Shown here piece after piece: positions 1 to 30,299 of a stretch of 64,000 nucleotides of DNA. How positions within the stretch are numbered: the stretch's first letter is position 1; each line of letters starts with the position of its first letter. Below the pieces are notes generated by a model, which saw nothing but the letters and a program-made list of their open reading frames with translations, made no database searches and was not told the origin of the DNA. The stretch lies in sequence record NC_031043.1, one strand, 5' to 3'. Made by a program: the position numbers and the translations under genes.

Positions 1-1
1 A

Positions 2-1378: not shown

Positions 1379-1390
1379 GGGGTAATCTCT

Positions 1391-2389: not shown

Positions 2390-2398
2390 GGTGACATT

Positions 2399-3322: not shown

Positions 3323-3344
3323 CAGTAAAAAGGCGGTAATGTAA

Positions 3345-4796: not shown

Positions 4797-4808
4797 GGAG
4801 TAAATGAA

Positions 4809-5798: not shown

Positions 5799-5803
5799 GC
5801 ACC

Positions 5804-6712
5804 ATGTCAATCGTACTCAATTGGAAACAGCAGCCGGGTCAGGTGTTGGATTCTATCGAAATCTACCGCTATGCCAACGCACGTGCTACACCAAACCCAA
5901 ATGCTCTCGGTACCCCGCTTGCCACATTACCGGGCGACGCTACCACGTATGAGGATACCGCGGTCATTAGCAACCAAGTGTATCAGTATCGCGTAGTGTC
6001 GGTGAAGGGAACGGACAAGGTGATGGGCTTGCCCATCGTGCAGGGATACTTCCCGTATACTGGCCCTGGCCCTCAAGAGTTGTTACGCGGGGATTGGTGG
6101 ATAGGTTACTTCGGTACACTGACCAACCAAGAGTTTTTCCTGAACTCAGCAGACATGAATGGACGAGCTGGTTTTGGCGTGTGGAACCAAAACCCAGTTC
6201 TGTTCCATAAGTTCGCTTATAAAGGGAAAATTATATTCATTCCGAACAGCCCGACTATGATGGGTACCTCGTACAATAACCAATACCTCGCAGGACTCAT
6301 TTGGGGTATGTCTGGCGCGGGACGTTTTACGCCAAACGGCCTTTCCGCCGTGGACCAGAGGAAAACGGTAATCAAAGACGGCTTCGAATACATTATTCGC
6401 TTGCCAGAGCTGTATGATAGTGGGAGCTATAGCAGCAATTATAACTCGCTGGCATTCTTTGTTCAGGGCGAGTGGTACAACACGATGGTGCGTCTTTATC
6501 GTGGAGCACCGGCAACAATGCCCGGACGTTGGGGGGATTTGGATGTTGTGCCGGGGAACGCTGGTACTGATCAGGGTGTGGCGCTTTTCGCGCAGGCGTA
6601 CAATAACCAAGTCAGTATTTACTATCGCGGCAGCTACCCCGATTCAGTCAGCACAATAAACAACGCCAACTCCGCTACAGTGTATCACGTATTAGAGTTA
6701 ATCCTTAACTAA
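5804..6712 (+). CDS. Virion structural protein, cassette type C, copy 2
   Basis: Starts MSIVLNW..IEIYR; contains GPGPQELLRGDWWIGYFG; ends VLELILN. Confidence 0.75.
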   Translation: MSIVLNWKQQPGQVLDSIEIYRYANARATPNPNALGTPLATLPGDATTYEDTAVISNQVYQYRVVSVKGTDKVMGLPIVQGYFPYTGPGPQELLRGDWWIGYFGTLTNQEFFLNSADMNGRAGFGVWNQNPVLFHKFAYKGKIIFIPNSPTMMGTSYNNQYLAGLIWGMSGAGRFTPNGLSAVDQRKTVIKDGFEYIIRLPELYDSGSYSSNYNSLAFFVQGEWYNTMVRLYRGAPATMPGRWGDLDVVPGNAGTDQGVALFAQAYNNQVSIYYRGSYPDSVSTINNANSATVYHVLELILN

Positions 6713-6722
6713 GGAGGTAGAA

Positions 6723-8252: not shown

Positions 8253-8264
8253 GAGGACTTTCTC

Positions 8265-9245
8265 ATGGCCTTAAAACTGAAATGGAAGAACCCCAACAAA
8301 GGGGCAACCAGCGTAGAAATCTATCGCGGTGATACACCCGACGTGGATTTAACGACCCCGCTTGTCACCTTATCCTCAGGCGAGTTAGCATGGGTAGATA
8401 CCACTGCGTTGTTTGGCAGTACCTACTATTACGTCTGGGCGGTTAACACTGCTAACGACCGTGTGGTCAGTCGTCCTCAGAAAGTGGAAGTCGCAGACCG
8501 TAAAGGTCCCGGTCCAAATACGTTGCAAGCTGGTAATGAGTCTTACGGATATTTTGGTTCCGTGCCGAGCGCGGACTTCGTTAATAGCTCTACTGTATTA
8601 GCCGCATTAAAAACTTTGTCTGGTATCCCGGGCGGGACATCCTACCCAACGTGGTATAAGTTTATCCGGAACGGTAAAGTTCTGTTTGTGCCTAATACGA
8701 CCTTCGGTGACGTGTCTTGGATTAGTCTGTATAATGCAGGGGCGGTTTATGGTACGGACGATAACGGCGGTGTAAACTCGCCCAATAACGTGAATCAGAT
8801 GACCACCTTTGAGTTAAACGGTGACCTGTTCTTGGTACGTTTAGCTAAAGGCGTTCCCGAAAACATGGAGTGGGACGGCACAGCGGTTAATTTGAACACC
8901 CTACCCGCGGCGCAAGGTATCTATGCAGAATACGAAGACCTCATGTATCCGTTAATTACCCTTAGCCCTTTACGAAAACGGATGGTTACTGTTGATGCTG
9001 TAAACCCCACTTCAATAATTCCATCCGGGACTTACAGCAACCGCACATCATACGGCGTAGTTATGCAGGAAGCAGCTACCGTAGCTAACTCAGTACAGCG
9101 TGGTGGCGGCACGTATAATTACGACGCGCATTCCCGTGGGACTATAGAGTCATTCTCTTTACGAGGACGAACGAGTGCTTGCTGTTGGTGGCCTGTAATT
9201 GAATACATTGGTCGTGTCGGCGAAATAAACTTAGCGAATGCATGA
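8265..9245 (+). CDS. Virion structural protein, cassette type B, copy 3
   Basis: Starts MALKLKWKNPN..VEIYRG; GPGPNTLQAG..GYFG; WYKFIRNGKVLFVP. Confidence 0.75.
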   Translation: MALKLKWKNPNKGATSVEIYRGDTPDVDLTTPLVTLSSGELAWVDTTALFGSTYYYVWAVNTANDRVVSRPQKVEVADRKGPGPNTLQAGNESYGYFGSVPSADFVNSSTVLAALKTLSGIPGGTSYPTWYKFIRNGKVLFVPNTTFGDVSWISLYNAGAVYGTDDNGGVNSPNNVNQMTTFELNGDLFLVRLAKGVPENMEWDGTAVNLNTLPAAQGIYAEYEDLMYPLITLSPLRKRMVTVDAVNPTSIIPSGTYSNRTSYGVVMQEAATVANSVQRGGGTYNYDAHSRGTIESFSLRGRTSACCWWPVIEYIGRVGEINLANA

Positions 9246-9254
9246 GGATAGAAC

Positions 9255-10157
9255 ATGGGTATTACAATCGAGTGGGACAATCAAGCCGACCAGCAGTTGG
9301 ATGCGATTGAGGTTTATCGTTCAACATCACCTATCGATGAAAACAGTCCCGGCGTCCCCATTGCAACCTTAAGCGGCACAGACCGACAATACATCGATAA
9401 TGACGTGCGGGTTGGCAACACCTATTATTACCGAGTGGCCGTGAAGAAAGGAGAGAATCGCTCCTTTGGTGCTAATCAAACCCAGGGGTACTACTCCAAT
9501 CTAGGTCCTGGACCGCAGAAGGTTATCAGGGGGGATTGGGTACGAGGATTCTTTGGGGAGATTCCTCCGGTTGAATGGACAACGGTCACTGATGTTACCG
9601 ACAAGATTAAAGCGCAGTTAAAATCCTTAACGGGGATTACGCTTGCATCCAACACCGGTGCAATATGGTATAAATTTGTGTACAAAGGGAAAATCCTATT
9701 TCTTCCCAGTTTGCAGATGATTGTCAGTAATAACTGGCAGAACGGCTATAACGCCGGGTTTATTTACGGCGTGGACGGATTTGGCAGTACGCCAGACGGT
9801 GATGCAGGTGCCGTTAATCAGTTGACGGTGATTGAGGTCGCTGGGCAGCAATACATTGTCCGTGCGATTCGTCTTAGCGATAAACCAACTTCTCAGTATC
9901 TGACAGACCCGTTGGACTTCAATGACAGCGAATGGAAATCAACATACGCGCGTTTACGTACTGATAATGCAGCGTTGACTGACCCTACAATCCAACCGCG
10001 CTTCAATGACTTGGGTTCTATAGTTGGTACAGGTAGCGCGCACATGGCGGATGCTACCAGTCTAGCCACAGTATCGAACTCTACTCCTGAAACGCTAACC
10101 AAGGCACTTAAGACCAGCAGCATCAGCTGGATGGTTGTGCTTGAGTTAATACCGTAA
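9255..10157 (+). CDS. Virion structural protein, cassette type C, copy 3
   Basis: Starts MGITIEW..IEVYR; GPGPQKVIRGDWVRGFFG; ends VLELIP. Confidence 0.75.
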   Translation: MGITIEWDNQADQQLDAIEVYRSTSPIDENSPGVPIATLSGTDRQYIDNDVRVGNTYYYRVAVKKGENRSFGANQTQGYYSNLGPGPQKVIRGDWVRGFFGEIPPVEWTTVTDVTDKIKAQLKSLTGITLASNTGAIWYKFVYKGKILFLPSLQMIVSNNWQNGYNAGFIYGVDGFGSTPDGDAGAVNQLTVIEVAGQQYIVRAIRLSDKPTSQYLTDPLDFNDSEWKSTYARLRTDNAALTDPTIQPRFNDLGSIVGTGSAHMADATSLATVSNSTPETLTKALKTSSISWMVVLELIP

Positions 10158-12534: not shown

Positions 12535-12637
12535 GTTCCAATTCCTTCTATTTACGGTACCGTAGGGACGCAATACAAACTGCGCCTTCATAATAAATTT
12601 AAAACTAGGCTACCCCACAAAGGAGGTAGCCCGAGTC

Positions 12638-13162
12638 CTACAGGTGTGACACCAATTTATTCCACTCAATTGGCTTTTGTGGAATGACCGATACGGTTCC
12701 CCGGGTCGGTGACCAGACCGTTAAGTTCGCCTGATTCCGCACATCAAAATGGAACCAGCTGATGTCGGTTTCTAAGAAGTGAATGAACGGGAACTCGTTC
12801 GGATTCTGCATGATGTAAGCACGAACTTCTTGCGAGCTGTAGTTCTGGAAGTTTAAGTCCATTGCCCCGCCGTATTTGTGCATGCTGTCAGACGCCGCGT
12901 AAAGCTCGTGAGCGCGTTCTTTCCAATTACCGCCCTTTGGCTTCTCTTGGTTAATAAAGAACTGTAGCGTGCGAATGGTGCGCTGTGTCATACCTTTAGA
13001 CGGCGAATTTGCAACGATAGGCCCGAACTTGTTACGTAACTGCTGTAACGTCACCATTACCAACGGACTAATCAAGTAAGCCGCATTAGCACCGCGCCGT
13101 GCAATGATATCCGGTGGGACTAATTCTTCGAGCTTAAACTGCTTGGGGTTCGGTTGGAACAT
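12638..13162 (-). CDS. Peptidase M15-like zinc peptidoglycan hydrolase
   Basis: SMHKYGGAMD matches the SxHxxGxAxD zinc motif and WFHFDVR matches WxHxDxR of M15 (LAS-family) peptidases; AGGAGG SD. Confidence 0.7.
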   Translation of the reverse strand: MFQPNPKQFKLEELVPPDIIARRGANAAYLISPLVMVTLQQLRNKFGPIVANSPSKGMTQRTIRTLQFFINQEKPKGGNWKERAHELYAASDSMHKYGGAMDLNFQNYSSQEVRAYIMQNPNEFPFIHFLETDISWFHFDVRNQANLTVWSPTRGTVSVIPQKPIEWNKLVSHL

Positions 13163-13826
13163 GGGTGCCTCCTGCAGGCGGTATTGGGTAACTCAGGAAT
13201 GAACGTTTAATGTTCAAGTATAAGACATGCGCCTGTCGACCGCTATACAGCTCAGACATGTCTTGTGGGGGAATAGCGACTTCCGGACGTTCACGCACGA
13301 ACTCATAATTGCAGTTCATGTTAAAGGTGTAAGCATCCGGTTTTAAATAGATGCAGCCTTTGTTGTTGTCGATATACGACTCGATACCAAAGTGCTTGAC
13401 CGCCAGATAGAACGACTGTCGGGTGAGCCACGCCACATTAAGCTGTTTCATGACGTACAGGAACATGCGGTCTGCAAACTCTTTATTAATGAAACGATTG
13501 AGCTTACCGCAAGCCGTGTCTTTGTAATGGCCGATAATCGGAATCTTCTGGTACAACAAATCATGCAGACAAGCCGCAGGACCGTAATCGCCTTCCGGTT
13601 TAAACAAGAACTGTAGCTGTGTAGGAATTGAAGCTAAATCGGTTACAAACCCTTTCGGGGCAACCAAATATAAAGGGGTGGTGGACACTAAGCCCGTTTC
13701 CTTTAAAATGACCCCGAGTGTTTTCGGGTCGTCCTCGTACAGACCAGCTAATGTAAAACCGAAGTTGAAGTCTTTGGTAAGAATAAACCAGTGGTCATCT
13801 AACCGTGTGTATTCAAACTTATCCAT
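13134..13826 (-). CDS. DUF1353 family protein
   Basis: APKGFVTDLASIP..YGPAACLHDLLY..ADRMF..M..L.V..FYLAVKHFG, the characteristic DUF1353 pattern. Start placed at MDKFEY (AAGGA SD). Confidence 0.7.
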   Translation of the reverse strand: MDKFEYTRLDDHWFILTKDFNFGFTLAGLYEDDPKTLGVILKETGLVSTTPLYLVAPKGFVTDLASIPTQLQFLFKPEGDYGPAACLHDLLYQKIPIIGHYKDTACGKLNRFINKEFADRMFLYVMKQLNVAWLTRQSFYLAVKHFGIESYIDNNKGCIYLKPDAYTFNMNCNYEFVRERPEVAIPPQDMSELYSGRQAHVLYLNIKRSFLSYPIPPAGGTHVPTEPQAV

Positions 13827-13858: not shown

Positions 13859-13892
13859 AAAAAAAGAACAAGGTGTGCCCCGAAGGGCACAC
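13859..13892 (-). terminator. Intrinsic terminator closing the radical SAM operon
   Basis: On the minus strand GTGTGCCC-TTCG-GGGCACAC (UUCG tetraloop, 13873-13892) is followed by CTTGTTCTTTTTT, 3 nt after the stop at 13895. Confidence 0.85.
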
Positions 13893-13894
13893 GC

Positions 13895-14551
13895 TTAGGC
13901 TTCTGCTACAAACTTCTCACGCATGCCTTTGAGTTTAGTGTACTCACTCTTCTCGGCCGCAATACGTGCGTCCCGTTTAAAGTCAGTCAACTTCTCATGC
14001 AGCGCGTTCGTACGGCTTACGATACCTGAATTCAACGCTTTCAAATCATCCAGCGTAAACTCCAGCTTTTCGTTATTCGCGTCCACCCAGTAACCCGGGC
14101 TTTCATCGACACTGAGATAACGAGCAATCGCAGCCAGCGCTTTTTCATCAGTCTGGTAAACACGCCCACCCAGCTCGATAGGTTGCACTACCGCTTCGCT
14201 GTATGCCTGATTTACCCACGCAATCAAATCGTGCAGCAGTGCGTAGCACTTGCCTGACGTTGAGATACGCTCTGCCTGACGGGTTGCCAAATCGATTTCC
14301 AGCACGTCTTTGATAAACGTGTGTGCTGACTTAAGCACGAACTTAATCTCCAGCGGAGACAGTCCCTGCTCTTTCAGCTGAGCGGAAAGCTCGTCGTCTT
14401 TCATCCCATCGAGTAAACGATAGTGTGCCAGACGTGACAGCGACGGGTTCCAACGACCATCACTCAGATGACCATCGACGAACTGACCGTGACGGTCGAC
14501 GAGTTTCCCGCTGTTCAGGAAACGATTTTTTATTTCGTCATTACTAAGCAT
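13895..14551 (-). CDS. DUF4376-like tail-fibre-associated protein
   Basis: The C-terminal half PIELGGRVYQTDEKA..YWVDANNEKLEFTLDDLKAL..K resembles the DUF4376 pattern (G..f..D..s..W..aDN..v.lt...l..l), a domain usually encoded beside tail-fibre genes. Confidence 0.55.
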   Translation of the reverse strand: MLSNDEIKNRFLNSGKLVDRHGQFVDGHLSDGRWNPSLSRLAHYRLLDGMKDDELSAQLKEQGLSPLEIKFVLKSAHTFIKDVLEIDLATRQAERISTSGKCYALLHDLIAWVNQAYSEAVVQPIELGGRVYQTDEKALAAIARYLSVDESPGYWVDANNEKLEFTLDDLKALNSGIVSRTNALHEKLTDFKRDARIAAEKSEYTKLKGMREKFVAEA

Positions 14552-15093
14552 TCAGTTTTCCCCACGATGCCGATATCTTTCAGCAGACCGTAGTCGAGGA
14601 ACTGATAGTCCTTGGCCAGGTCGTACTGCCAGATGAGGTTGTTAATACGTTGCTCTTCCGTAATCTCTTCGGCCGTATTGAACACCCCTACGTGTTCCCA
14701 AATCTCAAAGTAGTTACATTGGTCTTTACTGTTGCGGACAATAAGGACTTTATTGAGTGGGAACGACTGCGCCACTGCAACCAGAGAAGTTACCGCTTTA
14801 CCGTGATTGGTACGGTACAGCACTTTCAGTTTGCTTGGCGGGGTTTCCAGCATACGCTCTTCGAGACCGGTGTTACGCAGCTCAGCCTGTGCCAGTGAGT
14901 TGTGACCCTGCTCCACGCAGTCCAGTTCAATCAGCACATTCAGGGAATGACGCACCACCAGTCGTTTAACAACGTCGGTGTAGTTCTCAGCTTTACACAG
15001 CAGAGTTACATCGAACAGCTTGTGCTTCGTCAGGAACTGGTCCAGCAACGTTGTATCAAGCCTGGTAAAATTGTGAATCAGTAATGACTTCAT
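14530..15093 (-). CDS. Hypothetical accessory protein of the radical SAM operon
   Basis: Open frame overlapping both neighbours (translational coupling); start placed at MKSLLIH; no motif recognised. Confidence 0.55.
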   Translation of the reverse strand: MKSLLIHNFTRLDTTLLDQFLTKHKLFDVTLLCKAENYTDVVKRLVVRHSLNVLIELDCVEQGHNSLAQAELRNTGLEERMLETPPSKLKVLYRTNHGKAVTSLVAVAQSFPLNKVLIVRNSKDQCNYFEIWEHVGVFNTAEEITEEQRINNLIWQYDLAKDYQFLDYGLLKDIGIVGKTECLVMTK

Positions 15094-16417
15094 TGGTCTT
15101 TTCCTGTTTAACTGGAGCGTGCTTATGTTCAACTGCCGGAGCTTCGGGCTGAGCACGTGAAAGGGTTGGGAGTTTGTTTTGTGCGGATGCCTTCACACGG
15201 CACTCGTAGCAGTTACAGGACAGTTTCTCGAACTGGTCACCATAAGTGCCGAAACGACGTTCCCACCATTGGGCGGTCAGCAGTTTAGCCGTAGTCCAAC
15301 CACACTGGCGGCGCTCAGAGTGATAAGCTTTACGGGCTTCTTCTTCGCCATCGCCATTCTCATACGCAGCGGCCACGCAGGACGCACAGATGTGTTTGGC
15401 TGGGCAACCCAGACATGCATCCGGGTAAGACTGCCACTGGGTCTGTACTTCGTTCAGCAGTTTGCCACCGTCGGTGTTGATAATCTCACGACCAACCAGT
15501 TTGGCAATTGCTTGACGCGTAGTGACCGTTGACATGAAGCGGTTACAACCGTAGATGTTACGGTCAAAGCCGAGACAGGTCATGTGTACCGTGGTACCAC
15601 AGTGAGGACGCAGACGCTCTGGGTCGTAACGAATCTGATCGTCATGCAGAAGCTTTTCACGCCAGTCCGGTTTCCACAATTCATCGACGTTCATGCCACG
15701 TGGGGTAATGTGCCCCATTTCAGCGGTCGGGTCTTTGTGCAAATCTTTACCAATCCAGTATTCCAGCACTTCAATCATCTGGTTAGAGATGCCGAGCGCC
15801 ATATCACGTGGAATGATATCTTCGAAGACCATGTTACCGTAGATAGTACCACCGCCTGATTGGTCAATCAGGGACTTCATGGACGCCGCATAATGCTTAA
15901 GCGTGTCGTGAGTAAAGGTGGCTTTAATACCCAGGTCATTAATCTTCATGGACTTGAGGTAATGGTAGCCTTCCAGCGCCTTCTCATACGAGCCCTTACG
16001 GGAAGTCGTAAAGATACGGTGCTTATCGTGCGTTTCAGGCAGACCATCGATTGACACGCCGATAGACAGCTTCGGATACCAGCGCTCAATGATTGAACGG
16101 TTCAGCGGTTTATCAAACAGCGTGCCGTTCGTGGAGATGGAGAACATGTACGGACGATTGTCTCGTGCCGCCAGAATCTCTGCAGTTTCAAAGGCCGCAA
16201 TCAGCAGCTTCGGTTGCAGGAAAGGTTCACCACCGATAATGTCGATAATCGCGCCACCCAGGTTAGGTTTACCTTTGTCGCGGTCAAAACAGGCGTGGAT
16301 GAAATCCACCACATCTTCTACACGGTTATTACGTGGAAACTTGCGCTCGTAGCAGTAATCGCAGTCGAGGTTACACGACAAGTTCGTAACAATCTGATAC
16401 GTTACGTCCATAGCCAT
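15056..16417 (-). CDS. Radical SAM/SPASM peptide maturase (CXXX-repeat target type)
   Basis: CNLDCDYC (CX3CX2C), GGEPFL, ISTNGT, VSIDG..HDKHR, and C-terminal CX7CX9C plus CLGCPAKHICASC (CX2CX5CX2C) plus RQC, i.e. SPASM-type auxiliary cluster ligands. Confidence 0.9.
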   Translation of the reverse strand: MAMDVTYQIVTNLSCNLDCDYCYERKFPRNNRVEDVVDFIHACFDRDKGKPNLGGAIIDIIGGEPFLQPKLLIAAFETAEILAARDNRPYMFSISTNGTLFDKPLNRSIIERWYPKLSIGVSIDGLPETHDKHRIFTTSRKGSYEKALEGYHYLKSMKINDLGIKATFTHDTLKHYAASMKSLIDQSGGGTIYGNMVFEDIIPRDMALGISNQMIEVLEYWIGKDLHKDPTAEMGHITPRGMNVDELWKPDWREKLLHDDQIRYDPERLRPHCGTTVHMTCLGFDRNIYGCNRFMSTVTTRQAIAKLVGREIINTDGGKLLNEVQTQWQSYPDACLGCPAKHICASCVAAAYENGDGEEEARKAYHSERRQCGWTTAKLLTAQWWERRFGTYGDQFEKLSCNCYECRVKASAQNKLPTLSRAQPEAPAVEHKHAPVKQEKTNEVITDSQFYQA

Positions 16418-16430
16418 AACAGCATCCCCC

Positions 16431-17303
16431 TCAGGAGTTAAGATTCAGGTAATTGTGCAGATACTTGTAAGTCTCTACACCGATAATTTGTGCCATGGCG
16501 TTACAGCCTGAGTTGACGTAAAACTCTACGTTCTCATTGTGCTTAATATCGCCGTTCGGCTCGACCAGTTTCAACTGGCCACAGGCATTACAGTTTTCGT
16601 GGTCGAAGAACTTCTCGAGACGGAAGACTGTATTAATCCCATTCACCGAATTCAACTCACGCATCTGAGACTCTAACTGCTTATAGCCGTAGATAAAGTT
16701 CAGAACATGATCCTGATTGAGAGGTTTGGCCATCAGTTTGTCAAACGTCAGGGTCATTGCACCCAAACGCAAGTGATGCATTGCCGAATGTAAACGCAAC
16801 GTATCTTCAAACCAGCGTGGCTTACTGACTTGTTCGCGGGTCAGCACGCCCCACGTAACGACATTGTCCAGCTCAGACATCACTTCAAAAGCTTCTTGCG
16901 CCCCGTCTTCCACAAACGCCATCAGACTGCGGTCACCACCTTCGAAGGTATCGATGGAGACGATGATGCGGTCAAACGTTTTCAGGAACTCGAGTTGCGA
17001 GAGCTTAAGTTTACGGCCATTGGTAAACAGCAGGTGTTTTGCAGAAGGCACTTGCTCACGCGCCTGTCCTACGAAGTCGACTAACTTCTGATAGGCAAGC
17101 AGCGGTTCGCCACCAGTCCACAGGAATTCCTCGACAAGAGGATTTTCTTTTATAATGTCCACCATTGCCTCTTTGTGTTTTGTTTTCGAGACATCACCTT
17201 TCGCCATGTGAGCCGCTCCTCCACAGAAGGAGCAGTTCAGGTTACACTTCGACGTAAGCGCAATGTCAATCATGGTTGCAGACGACTTAGGGGTATCGTG
17301 CAT
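16431..17303 (-). CDS. Second radical SAM enzyme with a short, twitch-like C-terminus
   Basis: CNLNCSFC (CX3CX2C), WTGGEPLL, FTNG, IVSID; C-terminal CNAC..VEPNGDI..GC. Start is uncertain (MHDTP at 17303 or MIDIA at 17273). Confidence 0.85.
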   Translation of the reverse strand: MHDTPKSSATMIDIALTSKCNLNCSFCGGAAHMAKGDVSKTKHKEAMVDIIKENPLVEEFLWTGGEPLLAYQKLVDFVGQAREQVPSAKHLLFTNGRKLKLSQLEFLKTFDRIIVSIDTFEGGDRSLMAFVEDGAQEAFEVMSELDNVVTWGVLTREQVSKPRWFEDTLRLHSAMHHLRLGAMTLTFDKLMAKPLNQDHVLNFIYGYKQLESQMRELNSVNGINTVFRLEKFFDHENCNACGQLKLVEPNGDIKHNENVEFYVNSGCNAMAQIIGVETYKYLHNYLNLNS

Positions 17304-18228
17304 CAGGATTCTTTTTCCACAGATTTTCCATGAAAGTGAAAATCGGGTCTGTGAGTCGGACGTTCTCACCGGCCTTAATCAAGCGCTTATCATGGTACGC
17401 CTCAAGAATAGCATCCAGTACCTTATTCCGGTCGTTCAAACGATTCAGTTCACCCACGGTAACTTCACTGCGAGTAAAGGAACTGACCGCCTGTTGCTCT
17501 TCGGCCGACAGGAGTCCCGCTTCATTGACTTTACCAACCAAGAAGGTCAGTACACGATGTAAGTCAGCGGTGGTATTAGGTTGCTCACCGTATTCACACT
17601 GAACCAGATAATTCGTCCATGGCTTACGGATACGTTTGGTAATCTCGTATTCGTCCGTGATTGCGGTCCACTTCATATCACGGTGTTGCCATGTAAATTT
17701 GTAGGAGTAAGCCCACAAGTCAGCCAGACAATCAATGCCCAACTCTTCGTAACCTTCAACCGGATAGTAACGCTCCAGGTTGTGGTAATCGGCATCCGGC
17801 ACTTCTGCTGCTTCAACCAGCGTATAATAGAATGGGAAGGAAGACGGGTACTCCCAGCCCCACTGACGCTGAATCATCGGCACCATGCCGTTTTCTTTAA
17901 ACGAAGCGAACACCATCTCGATAGGCATGGAGTAGTTCAGTACCGCATCGGTAAAGAAATACTTGTCGTTCACCAGCTTGCCGAAATACTCATCCGTACC
18001 GTTTAAGATGTACAGGATTTTAATGTGCAGACCTTCCGGAGTCGTGAACTCTTCACGGACTTCCGCGTTGTCTAAAATATCACGAGGACGCAGACGAGGG
18101 AACTCGCCCGGGTTCATGCAGATTAAACGCAGACGGTCGTTGACGTGTGCATCAACGCTGTCAGGCAACCCGAGGTGAATCGGATAGTTAAAGTTGGTGC
18201 GGAAGGCAAGATGCGAATTATTCTTCAC
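17287..18228 (-). CDS. Hypothetical accessory protein of the radical SAM operon (about 313 aa)
   Basis: GTG at 18228 is preceded by TAAGGAG, which overlaps the stop of the 69-aa gene; the longer ORF-track start at 18318 overlaps that gene. No motif recognised. Confidence 0.65.
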   Translation of the reverse strand: MKNNSHLAFRTNFNYPIHLGLPDSVDAHVNDRLRLICMNPGEFPRLRPRDILDNAEVREEFTTPEGLHIKILYILNGTDEYFGKLVNDKYFFTDAVLNYSMPIEMVFASFKENGMVPMIQRQWGWEYPSSFPFYYTLVEAAEVPDADYHNLERYYPVEGYEELGIDCLADLWAYSYKFTWQHRDMKWTAITDEYEITKRIRKPWTNYLVQCEYGEQPNTTADLHRVLTFLVGKVNEAGLLSAEEQQAVSSFTRSEVTVGELNRLNDRNKVLDAILEAYHDKRLIKAGENVRLTDPIFTFMENLWKKNPDARYP

Positions 18229-18238
18229 GGAAAACTCC

Positions 18239-18448
18239 TTAGGAAGGCCAAGTGACTGCTTTTGCGCCACCGGACGATGACCAGCTACAGCTGCCATTGC
18301 AACGGTAAGATGCGGCATTAATGCCGTTTAAACGGTTAGCATTGTTCACGGTACCGCGCGTCGCAATATAGGTGTTCGCTTGGGCGGTAGTGATGTAACC
18401 TTCAATACGTGCGAGTTGTACGCCAACCTCATTAAGGGATACGGCCAT
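18239..18448 (-). CDS. Short CXXX-family paralogue P3 (69 aa, only 2 Cys)
   Basis: MAVSLNEV..NNANRLNGINAASYRCNGSCSW aligns with the N-termini of P1 and P2; TAAGGAG SD. Confidence 0.8.
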   Translation of the reverse strand: MAVSLNEVGVQLARIEGYITTAQANTYIATRGTVNNANRLNGINAASYRCNGSCSWSSSGGAKAVTWPS

Positions 18449-18457
18449 GAGAACTCC

Positions 18458-18856
18458 TTACGGTCCTGAGCACCCGGAGCAACCCGTACATGAACTGGAG
18501 CAAGAACCAGAACAACCACCCGAGCAACCACCAGAACAGCTCGTCGAACAAGTCCCTGTACATGTTCCCGTACAGCTACCAGAACAGCCACCTGCGCAGC
18601 CTCCCGTACAGCTGGAAGAACATGAAGAACCACAGGTACCTGAACAGGTACCGGTACACCCGCCCGAACATGCAGAACCACACGTCCAACTGCAGGTGCC
18701 GCCACAGTGATAATAGTTTGCGTCTTGACCACCAAAGCGGTCTACGTTGTTTGAGGTTTTTGACCCAATGTACGACTGTACACCGGCTTCGGTTTTAAGA
18801 GCGGCTGATTCAATGCTGTTAAGCTGTGTTTTTACTGCATTAAGTCCAACTGGCAT
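18458..18856 (-). CDS. CXXX-repeat protein P2 (radical SAM target candidate)
   Basis: 50-aa N-terminal part followed by an 82-aa Cys/Ser/Gly/Thr tail with 21 Cys (18 CXXX units, then CTG CSG CSGP); TAAGGAG SD. Confidence 0.9.
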   Translation of the reverse strand: MPVGLNAVKTQLNSIESAALKTEAGVQSYIGSKTSNNVDRFGGQDANYYHCGGTCSWTCGSACSGGCTGTCSGTCGSSCSSSCTGGCAGGCSGSCTGTCTGTCSTSCSGGCSGGCSGSCSSSCTGCSGCSGP

Positions 18857-18868
18857 TTTTTTATCTCC

Positions 18869-19255
18869 TTACATCGGACCGGAACAGGCAGAGCAGCCTG
18901 TGCAGGAACTTGAACAGGAGCCTGAGCAGCCTGCACCACACCCGCCAGAGCAAGATGAAGAACATGCCGAGCCGCAGCCACCGACACACGTCCCGGAACA
19001 CGTCCCTGCGCAAGAACCAGTACACGTACCAGAACACCCGCCAGAACAGTTACCCGAACAGCTCGAACAACCAGAGGTACAGCCTGCAGAACAAGTCCAA
19101 CTACAACTCCCGTTACAACGGACGTCGCCGGGACTCATTCCTCCTAAGAAATTTGAGTTATATGCTTTCGATGCCACCTGTGCATCCACCGATGGACCGG
19201 TAGCGATTTGCAGGCGGGCCATCCTCGCACTAACATCGTTGAGTTTAACGGCCAT
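18869..19255 (-). CDS. CXXX-repeat protein P1 (radical SAM target candidate)
   Basis: 46-aa N-terminal part followed by an 82-aa tail with 21 Cys in CXXX/CXX spacing; AAAGGAAG SD. Confidence 0.9.
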   Translation of the reverse strand: MAVKLNDVSARMARLQIATGPSVDAQVASKAYNSNFLGGMSPGDVRCNGSCSWTCSAGCTSGCSSCSGNCSGGCSGTCTGSCAGTCSGTCVGGCGSACSSSCSGGCGAGCSGSCSSSCTGCSACSGPM

Positions 19256-19269
19256 ATGCTTCCTTTAAA

Positions 19270-19296
19270 GGGTGAGACTCGCATAGAGTAACACCC
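19270..19296 (-). promoter_or_regulatory. Imperfect hairpin between the last tail-fibre gene and P1 (weak terminator or attenuator)
   Basis: On the minus strand GGGTGTTACTC-TATGC-GAGTCTCACCC is followed by only TTT and then the P1 SD. Confidence 0.4.
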
Positions 19297-19310
19297 TGAC
19301 GTTATAAGAG

Positions 19311-20510
19311 TTATTTGGTGCCTGCCGCAGACTGAACGTCGTCGCGTGTGGTCAGGTTGGCGTTGATGTGAACGTTTGCCTGTACAACACCACCCGTGTT
19401 CTTGTTCAGGTACTGGTCGTGCGGGTTTGCCGCCGACTGGTGGTTTGCCAAGTTCTGGTTAGTAGTCGCAAGGTTACGCTCAAGCGCAGCAATACGGTTT
19501 TCTAAGCCAGCGTTAGCATTACCCATATCCGCAATCTGCTGTTTCAGGTTAGCGATTTCCTGATTAGCAGCCGCCAGTCCTTGCTTCAGCGTGTTAAGCT
19601 GCTGAGACAATAACCCGACCTGCGTTTCCAGTACCAGAATCTCATCCATCAACTCAGCAATTTGCAACTGGGTTTTCTGGTAGTTCTGGTCAACCACGTT
19701 TAACTGGGTGTTCCACGTTGCAATCGAACTGACCAGTGCCGCAATCTTCTGCGCCAAATCAGTGTCGGTAGCATTCAGAGTACCAATGTCTTGCAGGACG
19801 GCGTTGATGTTGCTCTGCACGGTCTGGACAAGCGCACTGACTTCTGCGGTAGAGTACACGTCCAGTTGACCACGGGTCAGCTTGTGAACGTTACCTTCAG
19901 CATTACGGTGCTCTTCCAATGCATCGAGCATCTCTTGACGATACGCTTTAAGCATGTTTTGAATCTGTACCATTTCGGCACTGGCACCCAGACGGATGGC
20001 ATCGTTCAGCTTAGACAACAGCGTGACGATATATTCAAAACCAAAGAAGTCACCGAGGTCACGGAATGCCGGAGCACCCGCAAACTCATCCGGAATGTTA
20101 CGCAGTTCGTAGAAGTTGATAGTCGGGTCGTCTAAGTCCAACGACTCCACACACTGGATAATACTTTCTACGTTAGCGGCGTACGGCCCACCCACAATCT
20201 GCGCGCTGACAGTAATGTCGGATGGAACAGACGATTTGGTGATTACGATAGCGGTCGCAATCTCACGCCCACCCACCATTTTGGTTAATGACGGATGCAA
20301 CAGAATCGCTTCGTAGTTTGTTCCGCGTACCAACGGTTGGTTGGGAGCATTCACCGGAGCAATTCGAAGCGTATCAACAAAGAACGGACCTGTCGGGAAA
20401 GCAAACGCTCGGTTAATGGTTCCCGTTCCGAGTTTAATCGGATGAGAGACCGCGTTACCGGTGTTAGTTCCAAACAGGTCCAATGGGTACTGCATTATAA
20501 CCTTACTCAT
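19311..20510 (-). CDS. Short tail-fibre-like coiled-coil protein
   Basis: Shares the YPLDLFG..N..F.TGPFF..L N-terminal domain with the three large fibres; long heptad-rich segment; HQSAANPHDQY motif. Start placed at MSKVI (AAGGAG SD). Confidence 0.7.
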   Translation of the reverse strand: MSKVIMQYPLDLFGTNTGNAVSHPIKLGTGTINRAFAFPTGPFFVDTLRIAPVNAPNQPLVRGTNYEAILLHPSLTKMVGGREIATAIVITKSSVPSDITVSAQIVGGPYAANVESIIQCVESLDLDDPTINFYELRNIPDEFAGAPAFRDLGDFFGFEYIVTLLSKLNDAIRLGASAEMVQIQNMLKAYRQEMLDALEEHRNAEGNVHKLTRGQLDVYSTAEVSALVQTVQSNINAVLQDIGTLNATDTDLAQKIAALVSSIATWNTQLNVVDQNYQKTQLQIAELMDEILVLETQVGLLSQQLNTLKQGLAAANQEIANLKQQIADMGNANAGLENRIAALERNLATTNQNLANHQSAANPHDQYLNKNTGGVVQANVHINANLTTRDDVQSAAGTK

Positions 20511-20565
20511 CGGAAAAGCTCCTTGATGGTGAGCAAAGAATGGGGAGCCGAAGCTCCCCACTTAT

Positions 20566-23500
20566 TTACATGCTCAGTGAGGAATCATGAATCATAACAT
20601 CAAGGAGAGCAGCCCACTGTGCATCGTAATAGATGTCAATGTAACGGCCTCCCGCGAATGTTCTTTCTTCCGTCCAGTAAAAGACTGGGGCTTTAGTGGT
20701 ACTATCCGGCCGCAGTGCCAGAATGTAATCCTTTCCTGTTGGTACAGTTAAGGTATACAGACCGATACTACTCGGCCCCGGAACCGAGGCAGGGATTGCT
20801 GGGGTAGGGAGAATGACCGCAGTCATATCCAACGAAGACGATACGAGCTTGGTTGCCCCATCCTGTATCAATTCAAACGCGATATAACACGGTGTATTCC
20901 CTGGCGCCTCCTTCACAACCAAACACAAAGCGTTCACTTGGTTTAACAATAGACCGCCTGAGCCGATAGTAAAGGACTGCGTACCGCCCGACCCACGAGA
21001 TACCCCGTTGATATAAATATCGACTGAGTCATCCACCTGCACGTTCAACACCAGATTCAGCGATGTTGGCGTAAAGTAGGTCTTCGTTCCCCATACAACA
21101 CCTGCTGCCAACGGTGGGGCATTCACCTTAATCGCTGGTGCAGCTAATGGCGGTGTATAGGAGTTGGTCGACTGCAGAACTTGTGGCCAGAGTTTCTCCA
21201 CTTTATTCGTAGGTTGGAACCAGTTCCCATTACTTACCTGTGGCAGGGTAATACGCTGCACCGCATCAAATGCACCGGCTAACGCGTTCGCATTGTCTAA
21301 TGCGGCGGCGGTGCCGTATGCTTTCGATAGGTCTGCACCCGGACGGCCAAGGTTCCAGAATCGTGTTGCATTCTGAGACGCCGCACCATACCCGAATCGA
21401 CAACTACGAGCAAACGTCGGGGCAGCGACCGCTAAATCAACTTCCAGATATTTATACGTCGGGTCATTACGCAATTGCCCTAAAGACAGTGCGCGCTTCG
21501 CGGCGTTAATTGTCCGGATGTTGGTGTCACGGTCACCAGTAGTCGGCAGCTTCGCACGTTGTACCGCGATGTAAAGCTTATTACCGCGACGCTCTACGTA
21601 CGCATGAGCATACCACGTGTTCCAAGCCAACTGGTCAACCACGGACGTATCCACAACACCAACTGTACGAGCATTGGATTGCAGATAGTTTTCTTTCAGG
21701 ACCGTAATCGATTCTGCACCCAGATGACCTTCGATGGAATTACTGATAACCAAACACAACGTTTGTTCACGACTGGCCGCGTTCTCGTTGGCTTTTAAAG
21801 CAGCCACAACAATCGCAGTCGCGTCGTTATCGGTATCGTTGGAGGTAATTACCGTGTTGAAGACGTAATCCCCTACCAGCTCATCAGAGATGAACCCGAC
21901 AAACGTTGCGGTGTTCAGTGTACATTCCACGATGTCATCGGCTGCCACATACTTCCACGCCAGCAGTTCACTTTCGTTAGCCGGACGGGTTTCTGTAGTA
22001 GTTGCGTGACTGAAGCGATACCAGCTGTTATAGATATCTTGGAAGGACGGGAATGAGAACGTGTTAATCGTGCCCAAGTTCTCCATGTTCGAGTAAATGG
22101 ACTCGGTCAGACTCCCGCCCGGAAGGTAGCCGTGCGCATACGGGTTATCCGCGTGTGCCAGTAAAGCCCCTACCTGCCCCAAACGTTTCACACGGGTGAT
22201 GTTCACTTCGCCTAACGCGTTAAGTGTTGTCACCACGTAACCAATGTACAGCCGAGAGTCCGTATCCGCCAACTGTGTTTTGGATACCAGATACTCAGCA
22301 GCCCCGGTGGTTGCATTTAACTGCACGTGGAAATAGAACGTCTGGTTCTGATACCCCGATGGGAACAACGCCTTGAAGTCAAACTGGCTGACCGGGACGA
22401 TATGTTCTTCCATCTTCGCAAAGAAAGGAATTGCCTGGGTGATATACAACAACATCCCTTCTGCCAGCTGAGGACCAAACAGAATCACCTGACGAGAAGG
22501 ACCCGTTGTGAAGTTACGGGAGTTGTTTGAATACGCGGTGCCGCCGTAATACGCCCCATTCGAAATCCATTGCGCTGCCAGAATCTCGTTGGTTTCAGGT
22601 AAATGCACAATATCGTATTCACCGTACGCCGGGTTAGCGCTATCTCTCGATAGTGTCCAGTTCGCAAAGTTCAGGTCACAGGTAATCGTTGGGGTGTACA
22701 TCGTCCCACCGCCCACTGTAGGCATATACCCTAACGCATGCGTGCGAATAACCCAACCGTCTGAACGTTTGATTAACCGTAACTGCCAGTAGTCGCCCGT
22801 AACTGCAAAACCTGTGGTAGCAGCATTAACACGATCTTCTGTGGCGATGGTCGTTGTACCACTAAAGTTTAAGGTCAGCACCCCTGCCGCAAAGGTCATT
22901 GGGACACGGAACGTATAGTAGTACATGTAGTTGATACCGTCAGCCTCTGTTTGACAGAATGTTGCGGTAGCAATACAAAGGTTCACGCCCCCTAAGTCGA
23001 AGAGGTTCAGCCAAGTCACTTTCCATTTAGAGGCAGCTTCACTAAACTTCGGAATGCGGCTGACCAACATGGATTGGAAATCCGCCCATTGGGTCGTGCT
23101 CACCGTCACCCGGTCCGCGTGCACCGAGGCGTTACCGTTGATGTTTTTGTAAGCGCGAGTTTCCGCTTGGTAGAACGCGGTACCGTTAAGGTAATTATTC
23201 GTACCATCAAACACATAAGCGCAACGTGCTAACGTGTTATAGGTTGCCTCAGGTAAAGAGGTGCGGTCGTTACTTGGACCCCATCCGCCGTAACCCGGGA
23301 AGTTATAAGACCCCGCGGTATCGTACCCGGTCTGAATACAGTCGCCGGTGTTAGTGCGACGGAACAACGCTTTCTTTACACTGTTCCCTAACTGAATCAT
23401 CCCACGCATGCGATACTGGTAAACAGACCCATACGCACCCAACACAGCTGGCTCACCACCCATGCGACCTGTTAACGGATTATCCCAACGTAAAGCTTCG

Positions 23501-26265: not shown

Positions 26266-26268
26266 TTC

Positions 26269-30291: not shown

Positions 30292-30299
30292 TGAATCCC

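Follow-up and report, generated by a model that had tools for sequence, protein, structure and literature searches.

A cysteine-repeat operon beside the tail-fibre genes

The DNA analysed here, a 64,000-nucleotide stretch 100% identical to NC_031043.1 (the giant Erwinia phage vB_EamM_Phobos) that we call the window, carries eight minus-strand genes, translationally coupled, in the order P1, P2, P3, gp165, gp164, gp163, gp162 and gp161 (Table 1; window coordinates equal record coordinates minus 124000). From P1 to gp165, the genes are separated by 12, 9 and 10 nt; gp165 and gp164 overlap by 17 nt, 13 nt lie between gp164 and gp163, and the last two junctions are overlaps of 38 and 22 nt. A strong UUCG terminator at 13892-13873 closes the operon, and the P1 ATG lies 55 nt past the stop of gp169, the last tail-fibre gene. 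The layout described in the first-pass annotation (eight minus-strand genes with overlaps or gaps of at most 13 nt, bounded by this terminator and this spacer) was thus confirmed upon re-measurement, as was its statement that the operon lacks a transporter, protease or immunity gene, none being found among the operon genes with Pfam, NCBIfam and PHROG profiles. No hairpin was seen in the 55-nt spacer between gp169 and P1; therefore, these two genes are probably co-transcribed.

Table 1. Features of the operon and its flanks, in window coordinates
Feature	Position	Strand	Description
gp169	19311..20510	-	virion structural protein; phrog_2163, E 2.6e-101
P1	18869-19255	-	128 aa, 21 Cys; phrog_6085, E 5e-39
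P2	18458-18856	-	132 aa, 21 Cys, P1 paralogue; phrog_6085, E 5.6e-39
P3 (gp166)	18239-18448	-	69 aa, 2 Cys; phrog_6085, E 2.6e-24, profile positions 1-67
gp165	17287-18228	-	313 aa; GTG start, TAAGGAG RBS; phrog_8030
gp164	16431-17303	-	290 aa, radical SAM; PF04055, E 2.5e-10; phrog_1802
gp163	15056-16417	-	453 aa, radical SAM/SPASM
gp162	14530-15093	-	187 aa; phrog_7988, E 6e-86; 38-nt overlap with gp163 end
gp161	13895-14551	-	218 aa; C-terminal DUF4376 (PF14301), E 5e-10, 40.2 bits, cut-off 25
Intrinsic terminator	13873..13892	-	GTGTGCCC-TTCG-GGGCACAC, 8-bp GC-rich stem, then T-run CTTGTTCTTTTTTT
gp160	13134..13826	-	DUF1353 (PF07087), E 1e-18; phrog_1158 ('tail assembly chaperone'); just past terminator

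P1 begins with an N-terminal domain of 46 residues ending in N-x-x-L-G-G-x5-x-R-C-N-G-S-C-S-W, after which a (C-X3)n repeat with 21 Cys and G/S/T/A spacers follows, visible in the DNA as a 12-nt period. An AlphaFold2 model of P1 was uninformative (pLDDT 46). P3 shares the N-terminal domain and the C-N-G-S-C-S-W motif of P1 and P2 and lacks the repeat; its length is 68-69 aa in all relatives, and therefore it is not a truncated gene. The proposed cysteine-repeat set P1-P3 accordingly holds for P1 and P2, whereas in P3 nothing beyond the common N-terminal domain and the C-x-G-x-C-S-W junction is present. The assignment to the CXXX target family TIGR04114 is likewise divided: P2 exceeds the cut-off of 20 bits (25.6) and P1 stays below it (17.8). 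In Phobos, P1-P3 are small free-standing proteins that are not fused to a fibre, and therefore the N-terminal part could be a leader instead of a docking domain.

Each of the three genes is preceded by an RBS (AAGGA for P1), and all are intact in EarlPhillipIV, CR5, pEa_SNUABM_38, pEa_SNUABM_29 and SPN3US, with 20-21 Cys in P1/P2. Differences between orthologues of P1-P3 concentrate at third codon positions of the minus frame; between the P2 genes of Phobos and EarlPhillipIV, they are distributed 11/11/74 over the codon positions, with 66 synonymous and 16 non-synonymous codons. Judged from this pattern, P1-P3 are real minus-frame genes under purifying selection. RefSeq places antisense plus-strand ORFs over P1 (gp168) and P2 (gp167), a strand choice that on the same comparative grounds is wrong for Phobos. 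The P genes are also missed or mis-framed in the annotations of CR5, pEa_SNUABM_38 and the model phage SPN3US, where P1 and P3 are absent and P2 is mis-framed.

The radical SAM pair and its neighbouring genes

gp163 carries a CX3CX2C motif (C15/C19/C22) and seven SPASM Cys, and its cluster-binding Cys are all invariant in the clade alignment. Over its full length, it scored 113.7 bits against TIGR04115 (cut-off 350) and 113.6 bits against the PapB family (cut-off 340), with E about 1e-32, and it falls far under the cut-offs of every characterised family in NCBIfam. Therefore, gp163 is not a member of TIGR04115; by its profile scores, its clade belongs beside TIGR04115 and the PapB peptide maturases, as a sister to both and below both cut-offs. 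gp163 is a full radical SAM/SPASM enzyme: although PF13186 (SPASM) gave no match to gp163 at E <= 0.1, the seven invariant Cys and the full-length match of the gp163-clade profile to CteB (5wgg, E 3e-36, CteB residues 105-432 only) establish the SPASM domain. We found no N-terminal RRE domain in gp163 or in gp164. gp163 is a predicted cross-linking maturase.

The shorter enzyme, gp164, contains the motifs CNLNCSFC and GGE, and its short C-terminal part, which bears Cys, is possibly twitch-like. Its best PDB match is BtrN, and we regard it as a putative second maturase. A natural fusion joins gp164-like and gp163-like enzymes in one 686-aa protein (locus L038). P1 is the predicted substrate of the pair.

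For gp165, RefSeq starts the gene at 18270, which probably makes it too long. The protein has a G-x6-A-D-x2-(R/K)-(L/V)-(I/L) motif and an AlphaFold2 model (pLDDT 83, pTM 0.76) that found no structural match in the PDB or BFVD save the Asesino orthologue. Its family is rare, with only 35 representatives among 1.84 billion proteins, and its relatives adjoin the substrate gene in L009, L010, L012 and L033-L040, L032 being an exception. gp165 is a conserved third component of the module, and from its position and conservation we propose that it acts as a substrate-docking or assembly partner.

gp162 has no Pfam or NCBIfam match and is clade-specific, being found in 18 loci that are all SPN3US-like. 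gp161 is the expected DUF4376-like gene, with a PF14301 score well past the cut-off (Table 1), and it also matches phrog_8169 and phrog_3811. In L033, phrog_3811 is matched as well by a 'tail fiber assembly' protein encoded upstream of the fibre with the Cys tip, and in L012 the module is followed by a DUF4376 gene. We take DUF4376 to be linked with tail-fibre assembly proteins, and gp161 is a probable fibre-assembly accessory protein. gp160 is a possible accessory to the module, as a DUF1353 gene (L010, 10068-10433) sits directly 3' of the radical SAM pair in a Campylobacter prophage. On the other flank, gp169 has an N-terminal domain common to gp171 and gp172 (same profile) and a long coiled coil but lacks a distal domain, and is likely the shaft or partner of the P proteins.

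The same module in other phages

A same-strand Cys-repeat ORF was present within 3.6 kb in 72 of the 80 viral loci that contain a gp163 relative, upstream in 67 of these 72, compared with 2 of 70 loci (847 kb) taken as controls, whose radical SAM enzymes are unrelated. At least five of the eight exceptions (L043, L054, L056, L059 and L063) bear same-strand upstream Cys-repeat coding stretches. The first-pass annotation had counted the occurrence, in relatives, of radical SAM genes lacking a CXXX partner as evidence against its proposal; what we observed was the two together in these 72 loci.

The Cys repeat forms the C-terminus of a tail-fibre protein in at least nine viral loci, which come from unrelated P2-like, lambda-like and jumbo phages. 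The fused proteins (L010/L035, L032, L033, L034, L036, L038, L039 and L040) are 247-568 aa long and end in the repeat; those of L033, L034, L038 and L039 match tail-fibre PHROGs (E to 1e-40), that of L010 matches Pfam Phage_tail_fib, and those of L032 and L036 match phrog_6085 at their C-termini. Four of the fused fibres (L032, L036, L039 and L040) carry the junction motif of Phobos. The genes of the Cys-tipped fibres come immediately after those for a central tail fibre J, a baseplate wedge or a tail fibre; tail-fibre assembly genes are also among their neighbours, and 3' of the fibre come a gp165-like gene and then a radical SAM enzyme or pair. In the loci examined, the module always lies within tail or baseplate gene blocks; even the loci of true TIGR04115 members (such as L045, L050 and L075, at 430-634 bits) adjoin baseplate genes. 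We found no publication on this module.

The virion proteome of SPN3US bears on the enzymes. It contains gp167 to gp173; the gp169 orthologue (SPN3US gp167) is thus a virion protein, and adjoining fibre and baseplate proteins were detected, with gp157 (the gp160 orthologue) at a low level. gp161 to gp165 were not detected, and the proteome contains neither the enzymes nor the gp165, gp162 and DUF4376 proteins, as expected of maturation factors. As the SPN3US annotation lacks P1 and P3 and has P2 in a wrong frame, that proteome is silent on P1-P3 and not supportive.

A proposed enzymatically cross-linked fibre tip and related known systems

We suggest, with moderate confidence, that the operon is a tail-fibre-tip maturation module in which the Cys-repeat P proteins are enzymatically cross-linked and mounted as a fibre tip. 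Since the same repeat tips the tail fibres of unrelated phages, phages probably cross-link fibre tips enzymatically. The idea that RiPP-type radical SAM chemistry was turned to a virion appendage is supported by the fibre-tip fusions and by the co-occurrence in 72 of 80 loci. P1 and P2, each with a short N-terminal docking domain, the C-x-G-x-C-S-W junction and about 20 C-X3 units, would be made late, probably on one transcript with the fibre protein gp169. gp163, whose SPASM domain would hold two auxiliary Fe-S clusters, and gp164 would then act on P1-P3 in the reducing cytoplasm, where covalent cross-links would make a rod of the cysteine ladder. Most likely these links on P1/P2 would be thioethers that join Cys sulphur to a carbon atom in the spacer. 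gp165 would probably hold or present the substrate, while gp161 (DUF4376) and gp162 would aid mounting of the product. We infer that the finished P proteins enter the Phobos virion at the distal fibre tip, plausibly on the gp169 shaft, which offers an anchor domain and coiled coil but no tip, and the enzymes would remain in the cell, outside the virion. Against this reading stand the lack of Asp, to which PapB links Cys, in the P1/P2 repeats and the scores of gp163, far under the cut-offs of the characterised families.

It is rather unlikely that the ladder stays free of cross-links and, along the axis of a trimeric fibre, binds metal ions or Fe-S clusters instead. The radical-SAM-like pair and gp165 would then load or shape a metallo-domain, or epimerise or oxidise Cys/Ser. 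Evenly spaced Cys and small spacers would permit coordination layers from three chains, and the tip of the T4 long tail fibre binds iron ions via repeated His-x-His motifs. The P1/P2 repeats contain no Asp, the acceptor residue of PapB, and gp164 is similar to BtrN and other twitch-domain enzymes, with a weak likeness to the anaerobic sulfatase maturase and to YydG, an epimerase. However, gp163 retains the full SAM-cleaving motif and both auxiliary-cluster motifs, and its nearest families (PapB, TIGR04115 and CteB/SCIFF) are all peptide cross-linking maturases; to our knowledge, radical SAM/SPASM enzymes have no metal-insertion function.

We give little credence to P1-P3 being leader-plus-core precursors of a released bacteriocin-like, signalling or anti-defence peptide whose position among tail genes is incidental. 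Their format as small proteins whose N-terminus is free of repeats and whose Cys core is repetitive, the kinship of the gp163 clade to RiPP maturases and the lack of the enzymes in SPN3US virions fit a diffusible RiPP. But genes for a leader peptidase, an exporter or immunity are missing from the operon, the same domain lies covalently within tail-fibre proteins of at least eight other phage lineages, the module is always inside tail or baseplate blocks, and the hairpin-free spacer makes co-transcription with gp169 probable. That the enzymes modify a nucleotide, DNA or a host target, the Cys-repeat ORFs being unrelated or non-genes, is scarcely credible and largely refuted: it could draw on the RefSeq plus-strand gp167 and gp168 over P2 and P1 and on weak matches at the N-terminus to models of QueE, MoaA and viperin, but the codon-position pattern and conserved Cys count mark the minus frame as coding, the antisense ORFs vary in extent among relatives, the QueE and viperin matches are limited to the common SAM-binding core, and Cys-repeat ORFs accompany the enzymes far more often than they do the controls.

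The TIGR04114/TIGR04115 system, hitherto treated as a RiPP system, resembles the proposed fibre-tip module in having Cys at each fourth residue, small spacers and a SPASM enzyme gene adjoining the substrate gene; gp163 aligns over the whole TIGR04115 profile, and P2 passes the TIGR04114 cut-off. Its true loci, unlike the Phobos module, have neither a second radical SAM enzyme nor a gp165-family protein. PapB, which acts on PapA in freyrasin (a ranthipeptide of Paenibacillus polymyxa), is the best-scoring NCBIfam equivalog for gp163; it is a SPASM radical SAM enzyme that lacks an RRE and installs one thioether per repeated C-X3 motif (PMC12373016). It differs in linking Cys to the Asp of CXXXD, and PapA is a small peptide rather than a virion-associated protein. 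The closest solved structure is CteB, the SCIFF maturase (5wgg, 5why), in which the radical SAM core and SPASM domain are covered. Its N-terminal roughly 100 residues, which we take to be a peptide-recognition (RRE) domain, are missing in the gp163 clade, its substrate, with six Cys in 45 residues, lacks a long CX3 ladder, and gp163 scored 42 against TIGR03974 (cut-off 425). HxsB/HxsC are likewise an adjacent radical SAM pair, long SPASM plus short, acting on a short-period repeat protein; HxsC is the top NCBIfam match of gp164, and gp163 also matches HxsB, with scores far under the cut-offs (58 vs 370; 48 vs 268). The repeats of that system are His-Xaa-Ser rather than Cys, and HxsA and HxsD equivalents are absent in Phobos.

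As a structural device, the proposed tip recalls the HK97 capsid chainmail, where cross-links formed after synthesis covalently stabilise a virion structure. In HK97, isopeptide bonds arise autocatalytically within the capsid, whereas Phobos would use dedicated radical SAM enzymes on a tail-fibre tip. HK97 work is among the entries in the reference list of PMC10052503. The module also shares the slot of lambda Stf/Tfa and P2 H/G: in L034 and L036, the Cys-tipped fibre follows the central fibre J, and in L010 it comes after baseplate J and I and before the sheath. Where a fibre assembly chaperone would usually lie, the gp165-like protein and the radical SAM enzymes are encoded. Classical chaperones, however, are non-enzymes, and here predicted redox enzymes would covalently change the fibre.

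P1, P2 and P3 are genuine minus-strand genes

Erwinia phage vB_EamM_Phobos (NC_031043.1, genus Derbicusvirus, 229.5 kb) matches the window at 100% identity, and subtracting 124000 from record coordinates gives window coordinates. The eight-gene minus-strand operon proposed in the first-pass annotation was recovered in every element and position, with all genes unbroken and with junctions formed by gaps of 12, 9, 10 and 13 nt and overlaps of 17, 38 and 22 nt. Upstream, on the same strand, lie the genes for the large virion proteins gp172, gp171, gp170 and gp169, after which the P genes come in the Phobos gene order, and the baseplate gene gp175 is nearby. The gp169 stop is 55 nt from the P1 start, and no hairpin was found between them. 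GC-rich hairpins mark three minus-strand gene ends, and two of them, after gp161 and between gp170 and gp169, carry a TTCG tetraloop. The hairpin ahead of gp169 has only a weak T-run and so may serve attenuation or RNA stability, not full termination.

Features of the Phobos module and its surroundings (window coordinates)
Feature	Position	Strand	Remark
P1	18869-19255	minus	
P2	18458-18856	minus	
P3	18239-18448	minus	
gp165	17287-18228	minus	GTG start at 18228
gp164	16431-17303	minus	
gp163	15056-16417	minus	
gp162	14530-15093	minus	
gp161	13895-14551	minus	
Terminator after gp161 stop	13873-13892	minus	GTGTGCCC-TTCG-GGGCACAC and T-run
GC-rich hairpins at gene ends	12607-12632, 13873-13892, 20541-20560	minus	
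gp160	13134-13826	minus	past the terminator; DUF1353; PHROGs name 'tail assembly chaperone'
gp169-gp172	19311-33923	minus	
RefSeq gp167, gp168	18447-19268	plus	antisense ORFs over the real genes P2, P1
RefSeq gp165	17287-18270		annotated start 18270 probably 42 nt too far upstream

P1, P2 and P3 were intact in all six genomes compared (Phobos, EarlPhillipIV, CR5, pEa_SNUABM_38, pEa_SNUABM_29 and SPN3US), with 20-21 Cys in P1 and P2, and a ribosome-binding site, AAGGA(G), precedes each of them. Differences between the P2 genes of Phobos and EarlPhillipIV were distributed 11/11/74 over the three codon positions (66 synonymous and 16 non-synonymous codons), those between P1 orthologues 20/11/65, and all three products matched one PHROG family of unknown function, phrog_6085. 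Therefore, the minus-strand reading of P1-P3 is the correct one.

In reference records, these predicted substrate genes are wrong-stranded, out of frame or missing. Besides the antisense RefSeq ORFs of Phobos, the CR5 record has a plus-strand ORF at the P1/P2 region, and that of pEa_SNUABM_38 has no gene called there. The EarlPhillipIV record calls P1 correctly on the minus strand and has an out-of-frame minus-strand ORF over P2. The SPN3US record leaves P1 and P3 unannotated, and its 'gp166' is an out-of-frame ORF overlapping P2. For gp165, the GTG start is served by a TAAGGAG ribosome-binding site and gives a length that agrees with its relatives. When the N-terminal 56 residues of P2 were compared with 5.8 billion predicted proteins in a word-indexed search, a single candidate, from a short assembly, was matched, which fits a systematic failure of gene callers on such genes; the match did not help to trace the putative docking domain.

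P1 and P2 share one layout: an N-terminal region of ~46-50 residues, an invariant C-x-G-x-C-S-W junction and a C-X3 repeat of ~75 residues. Spacers in the repeat are nearly all Gly, Ser, Thr or Ala, the repeat region contains no Lys, Arg or Asp, and the underlying DNA has a 12-nt period matching the C-X3 unit. P3 consists of the N-terminal domain and the junction without the repeat; its description as a truncated copy was rejected, as the length of 68-69 aa is kept in all relatives. Against the TIGR04114 repeat model (cut-off 20 bits), P2 qualified as a member (25.6 bits), P1 fell slightly short (17.8 bits) and P3 gave no match. The P1-P3 N-termini matched only one another in BLAST against all window ORFs, so no partner can be inferred by similarity. 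The AlphaFold2 model of P1, built on a four-row alignment, was unusable (pLDDT 46, pTM 0.31).

Enzymes, partner proteins and virion neighbors

Both gp163 and gp164 belong to the radical SAM superfamily (47.8 and 41.2 bits against Pfam PF04055, cut-off 29.5). Over its full length, gp163 (453 aa) matched the PapB model with 113.6 bits and TIGR04115 with 113.7 bits (E about 1e-32), far under the curated cut-offs of 340 bits (PapB-family NF047865) and 350 bits, and by score it is a member of neither family. The first-pass annotation had pointed to TIGR04115; its proposal held for the neighboring CXXX-repeat target (P1 and P2 lie 1.8-2.5 kb upstream) and failed on score. Among the other models that it had named, PF04055 and PF14301 were recovered, TIGR04114 was recovered for P2 only, and the SPASM model PF13186 gave no match to gp163 at E <= 0.1.

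An alignment of gp163 with 16 relatives, at identities down to 30%, contained an invariant CX3CX2C motif (C15, C19, C22), an invariant GGE motif (G62-G63-E64) and seven invariant C-terminal Cys (C273, C291, C335, C338, C344, C347, C372). The profile of this clade matched the thioether-forming enzyme CteB (PDB 5wgg) with an E of 3e-36 across the SPASM domain, followed by anaerobic sulfatase maturase as the second-best match. From the seven Cys and the CteB alignment, we assign gp163 to the SPASM-domain radical SAM enzymes; PF13186 weakly matches a fused relative in a 284-kb phage (locus L038). Because the match covers CteB residues 105-432 only, the N-terminal extension of CteB is missing from the gp163 clade. 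In CteB, these N-terminal ~100 residues are the peptide-recognition (RRE) domain.

The shorter enzyme, gp164 (290 aa), has CNLNCSFC and GGE motifs, which its relatives also carry, and, towards the C-terminus, a C-x2-C ... G-C pattern. Among proteins of solved structure, the twitch-domain enzyme BtrN is its closest relative; in NCBIfam, HxsC scores best, far under the cut-off (47.7 bits against 268); gp163 likewise reached 57.9 of the 370 bits required for HxsB, which places neither protein in these families. Iterated HMMs of gp163 and gp164 drifted to general radical SAM enzymes; they were used only for counting the radical SAM ORFs in each locus, and no subfamily was assigned from them.

No Pfam or NCBIfam match was obtained for gp165 (313 aa), and no Pfam match for gp165-like proteins. 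Its AlphaFold2 model is confident (pLDDT 83, pTM 0.76); Foldseek returned no PDB relative (best E 0.29) and, from BFVD, only the Asesino orthologue, and profile searches against PDB sequences found nothing. Since neither the model nor the profiles matched anything, no function by homology was given to gp165. Among 1.84 billion representative proteins searched exhaustively with a profile, only 35 relatives were returned. gp162 (187 aa) is confined to the SPN3US-like phage clade; its PDB matches to an animal-virus envelope glycoprotein (18-20 bits, E about 0.007-0.03, 59 residues) came from many redundant entries of one sequence and were judged to be chance. Matches of gp161 to PDB sequences were at chance level only. 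It is a DUF4376 protein (PF14301, 40.2 bits against a cut-off of 25, E 5e-10, residues 109-199) and also matches phrog_3811; in another phage locus (L033), this PHROG is matched by a 'tail fiber assembly' protein encoded ahead of a Cys-tipped fiber. Protease, transporter and immunity families were found in none of the eight operon products with Pfam, NCBIfam and PHROGs, in agreement with the first-pass annotation.

Among the virion neighbors, an N-terminal domain of ~200 aa is common to gp169, gp171 and gp172, all of which match phrog_2163, and an internal stretch of gp170 matches a tail-fiber PHROG. gp169 resembles a shortened paralogue, made up of the anchor and a long coiled coil only, with no distal domain. 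Its SPN3US orthologue, gp167, is present in virions (PMC5694885, Supplementary Table 1), as are SPN3US gp168 to gp173 and, at a low level, gp157 (DUF1353); SPN3US gp168 to gp170 were described as 'baseplate/tail fiber candidates' and are missing in a tailless mutant (PMC5694885). SPN3US gp161 to gp165 are not listed among the virion proteins (PMC5694885); therefore, the enzymes, gp165, gp162 and the DUF4376 protein are non-virion in SPN3US, as expected of maturation factors. The virion search used annotated ORFs, without P1 and P3 and with P2 mis-framed, so that study is silent on P1-P3.

Two further observations concern structural genes nearby. SPN3US gp157, the orthologue of gp160, was assigned to the head (PMC5694885), and its detection in virions does not fit a pure chaperone role. 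At window positions 1-10157 (plus strand), RefSeq gp146-gp154 are nine consecutive virion structural genes forming three tandem triplets (1404/999/924, 1452/990/909 and 1530/981/903 nt); they suggest a three-gene cassette that was triplicated, the counterpart of the SPN3US paralogue family B head proteins.

Cysteine-repeat domains and radical SAM enzymes in other phages

Full-length relatives of gp163 at >=60% identity were found in 62 records of the phage collection, comprising Derbicusvirus, Seoulvirus/SPN3US and many Erwinia giant phages. In the synteny check proposed in the first-pass annotation, the order P1, P2, (P3), gp165, gp164, gp163, gp162, gp161 was kept in 18/18 inspected loci of SPN3US-like phages. 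Two SPN3US-like metagenomic phages have a third radical-SAM-like ORF of ~300 aa between P1 and P2 (L025 3545-4456, L031 3546-4457).

We regard gp163 relatives of 30-39% identity in unrelated phages as the decisive comparative evidence. In a P2-like prophage of Campylobacter pinnipediorum (L010/L035), baseplate J and tail protein I are followed by a 384-aa tail-fiber protein (Pfam Phage_tail_fib) whose last 40 residues form a C-X2-3 ladder, and then by a 250-aa gp165 relative (E 3e-7), both radical SAM enzymes, a DUF1353 gene, sheath and tube. In two lambda-like loci (L034, L036), the central fiber J precedes a Cys-tipped side fiber, a gp165-like gene and one or more radical SAM genes. The 284-kb phage (L038) encodes a 1143-aa tail fiber, a 451-aa Cys-tipped fiber and a gp165-like protein in succession, and a single 686-aa protein (6131-8191) in which two Radical_SAM regions are combined with a SPASM domain, a natural fusion of gp164-like and gp163-like enzymes. 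Three more loci (L032, L033, L039) are arranged analogously, and L039 also bears collagen-like G-x-y repeats. Free-standing Cys-repeat proteins of 76 and 116 aa occur in L009 and L012, where a gp165-like gene and then the two radical SAM genes come next, with a tail assembly chaperone (PF16778) downstream in the former and a DUF4376 gene in the latter.

The fibers of L033, L034, L038 and L039 match tail-fiber PHROGs and, at the C-terminus, phrog_6085. Two junction types continue motifs typical of fiber shafts. One, N-x-x-x-L-x-G-x5-Y-x-C-x-G-x-C-S/T-W, occurs in Phobos P1-P3, L032, L036, L039 and a further locus, L040; the other is Y-F-(N/D)-G-(S/T)-G-(D/N)-x2-I-x2-G-C-x-S-G-C. By sequence, the Cys-repeat domain is assigned to the tail fiber in these relatives, and in Phobos gene position alone suggests the same. 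The first-pass annotation had proposed that RiPP chemistry was turned to the building of a virion appendage, and the repeat domains fused to fibers in unrelated phages support this.

It had also named radical SAM genes occurring in relatives without CXXX genes as evidence that would count against this reading; both were present together in 72 of the 80 best viral loci, where a ladder ORF was defined by >=8 Cys on the same strand and <=3.6 kb from the enzyme gene, and in 67 of the 72 it lay upstream. Of the eight exceptions, at least five retain upstream, same-strand coding stretches with Cys repeats, one cut by a contig end and the rest missed by the ORF definition. Among 70 bacterial and archaeal control loci (847 kb in all), chosen as matches to the generic radical SAM core only, two had such an ORF; both have longer matches and may be true members.

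Three gut-phage contigs (L045, L050, L075) encode true TIGR04115 members (430-634 bits) with 25-28% identity to gp163, compared with 115-169 bits for the other fiber-associated relatives. Their loci contain a single radical SAM gene, lack a gp165-like gene and encode Cys-repeat proteins of up to 60 Cys. The maturase and repeat genes of L050 and L075 directly follow tail protein, baseplate wedge and baseplate genes. L075 (IMG/VR contig 3300029053_000015, 267-12873; Cys-repeat proteins of 176 and 262 aa) has ~12 near-identical loci. These few inspected loci provide a lead that canonical TIGR04115 loci are phage-tail associated too. A reverse transcriptase gene ~5 kb downstream in L075 is possibly part of a diversity-generating retroelement targeting the same tail region. 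Separately, MAGs of Candidatus Termititenax/Margulisiibacteriota (L095-L097) encode 660-667-aa proteins with ~50 Cys in C-X3 and C-X2-3 ladders, adjoining a near-TIGR04115 enzyme (275 bits).

Putative mechanism and comparison with known systems

We provide a putative mechanism, in our view the most likely one, for maturation of the Phobos Cys-repeat proteins. The operon would be transcribed by read-through from gp169. gp163 is predicted to install one thioether per C-X3 unit through SAM-derived radical chemistry and would hold the substrate Cys at an auxiliary cluster, the mode of binding reported for PapB (PMC12373016). gp164 would carry out a second step or one that complements the first, and the two may act as one machine because they are fused in L038. 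From position and conservation, gp165 could supply the substrate recognition that both enzymes lack, and gp161 and gp162 could help mounting. P1 and P2 would dock on a fiber via their N-terminal domains, and P3, which has no repeat, might be a third chain or a cap. The receiving fiber may well be gp169, with its shared anchor domain and a long coiled coil but no distal domain. Fibers are assembled in the reducing cytoplasm, where disulfides are impossible, and thioethers would permanently cross-link the extracellular tip.

Other readings were weighed. The Cys ladder might bind metals or clusters, to which its regular Cys spacing would lend itself; we consider this unlikely. A diffusible RiPP, suggested by the enzyme type, is more doubtful again: unlike in a classical secreted RiPP cluster, no leader peptidase, exporter or immunity gene was found in the Phobos module with Pfam, NCBIfam and PHROGs, and gp163 has no RRE-like extension. 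An unrelated radical SAM function beside non-coding P ORFs, in line with the RefSeq gene calls, is largely refuted by the coding evidence and highly improbable.

If cross-linking of a fiber tip is true, it would be the first instance found in which radical enzymes cross-link a structural protein of the virion, and there is a substantial chance that the module defines a new class of virion modification. A literature search across the full text of ~8.4 million papers and preprints found no work linking radical SAM/SPASM enzymes with tail fibers, which leaves unpublished status unproven, and none treating the SPN3US radical SAM genes. Phages would then build a host-contact organelle by radical SAM chemistry, with covalent cross-links installable in a reducing cytoplasm where disulfides fail, and virion biology would gain a new type of post-translational modification. 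The conservation of two radical SAM genes in SPN3US-like giant phages would be explained, and the gp165 family, with a predicted fold unmatched in PDB and BFVD, would be a third, widely conserved partner. The uncharacterized CXXX-repeat maturase family would acquire a biological role. It is conceivable, at somewhat less than an even chance, that Cys ladders, with SPASM radical SAM enzymes as their maturases, constitute a general, so far unrecognized class of tail-fiber tips, comprising the canonical TIGR04114/TIGR04115 'RiPP' system and the two-enzyme sister clade. On that reading, a supposed peptide natural-product family would prove to be virion armor or a receptor-binding device, overlooked because its low-complexity genes escape gene callers or are put on the wrong strand, even in the model phage SPN3US.

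In its predicted mode of action, the Phobos module resembles maturase pairs of the CXXX-repeat or PapB type. However, PapB-family substrates carry a CXXXD motif, whereas the P1/P2 repeats have no Asp, and unlike the His-Xaa-Ser system, the Phobos repeats are Cys-based. Compared with TIGR04115, PapB, SCIFF and HxsB/HxsC, the Phobos enzymes miss the membership cut-offs, and the module adds a second enzyme and a gp165-family partner and lacks export and protease genes. Above all, modules of this type differ from these systems in their fixed place within tail-fiber modules and in the covalent fusion of the substrate domain to fibers in the phage relatives.
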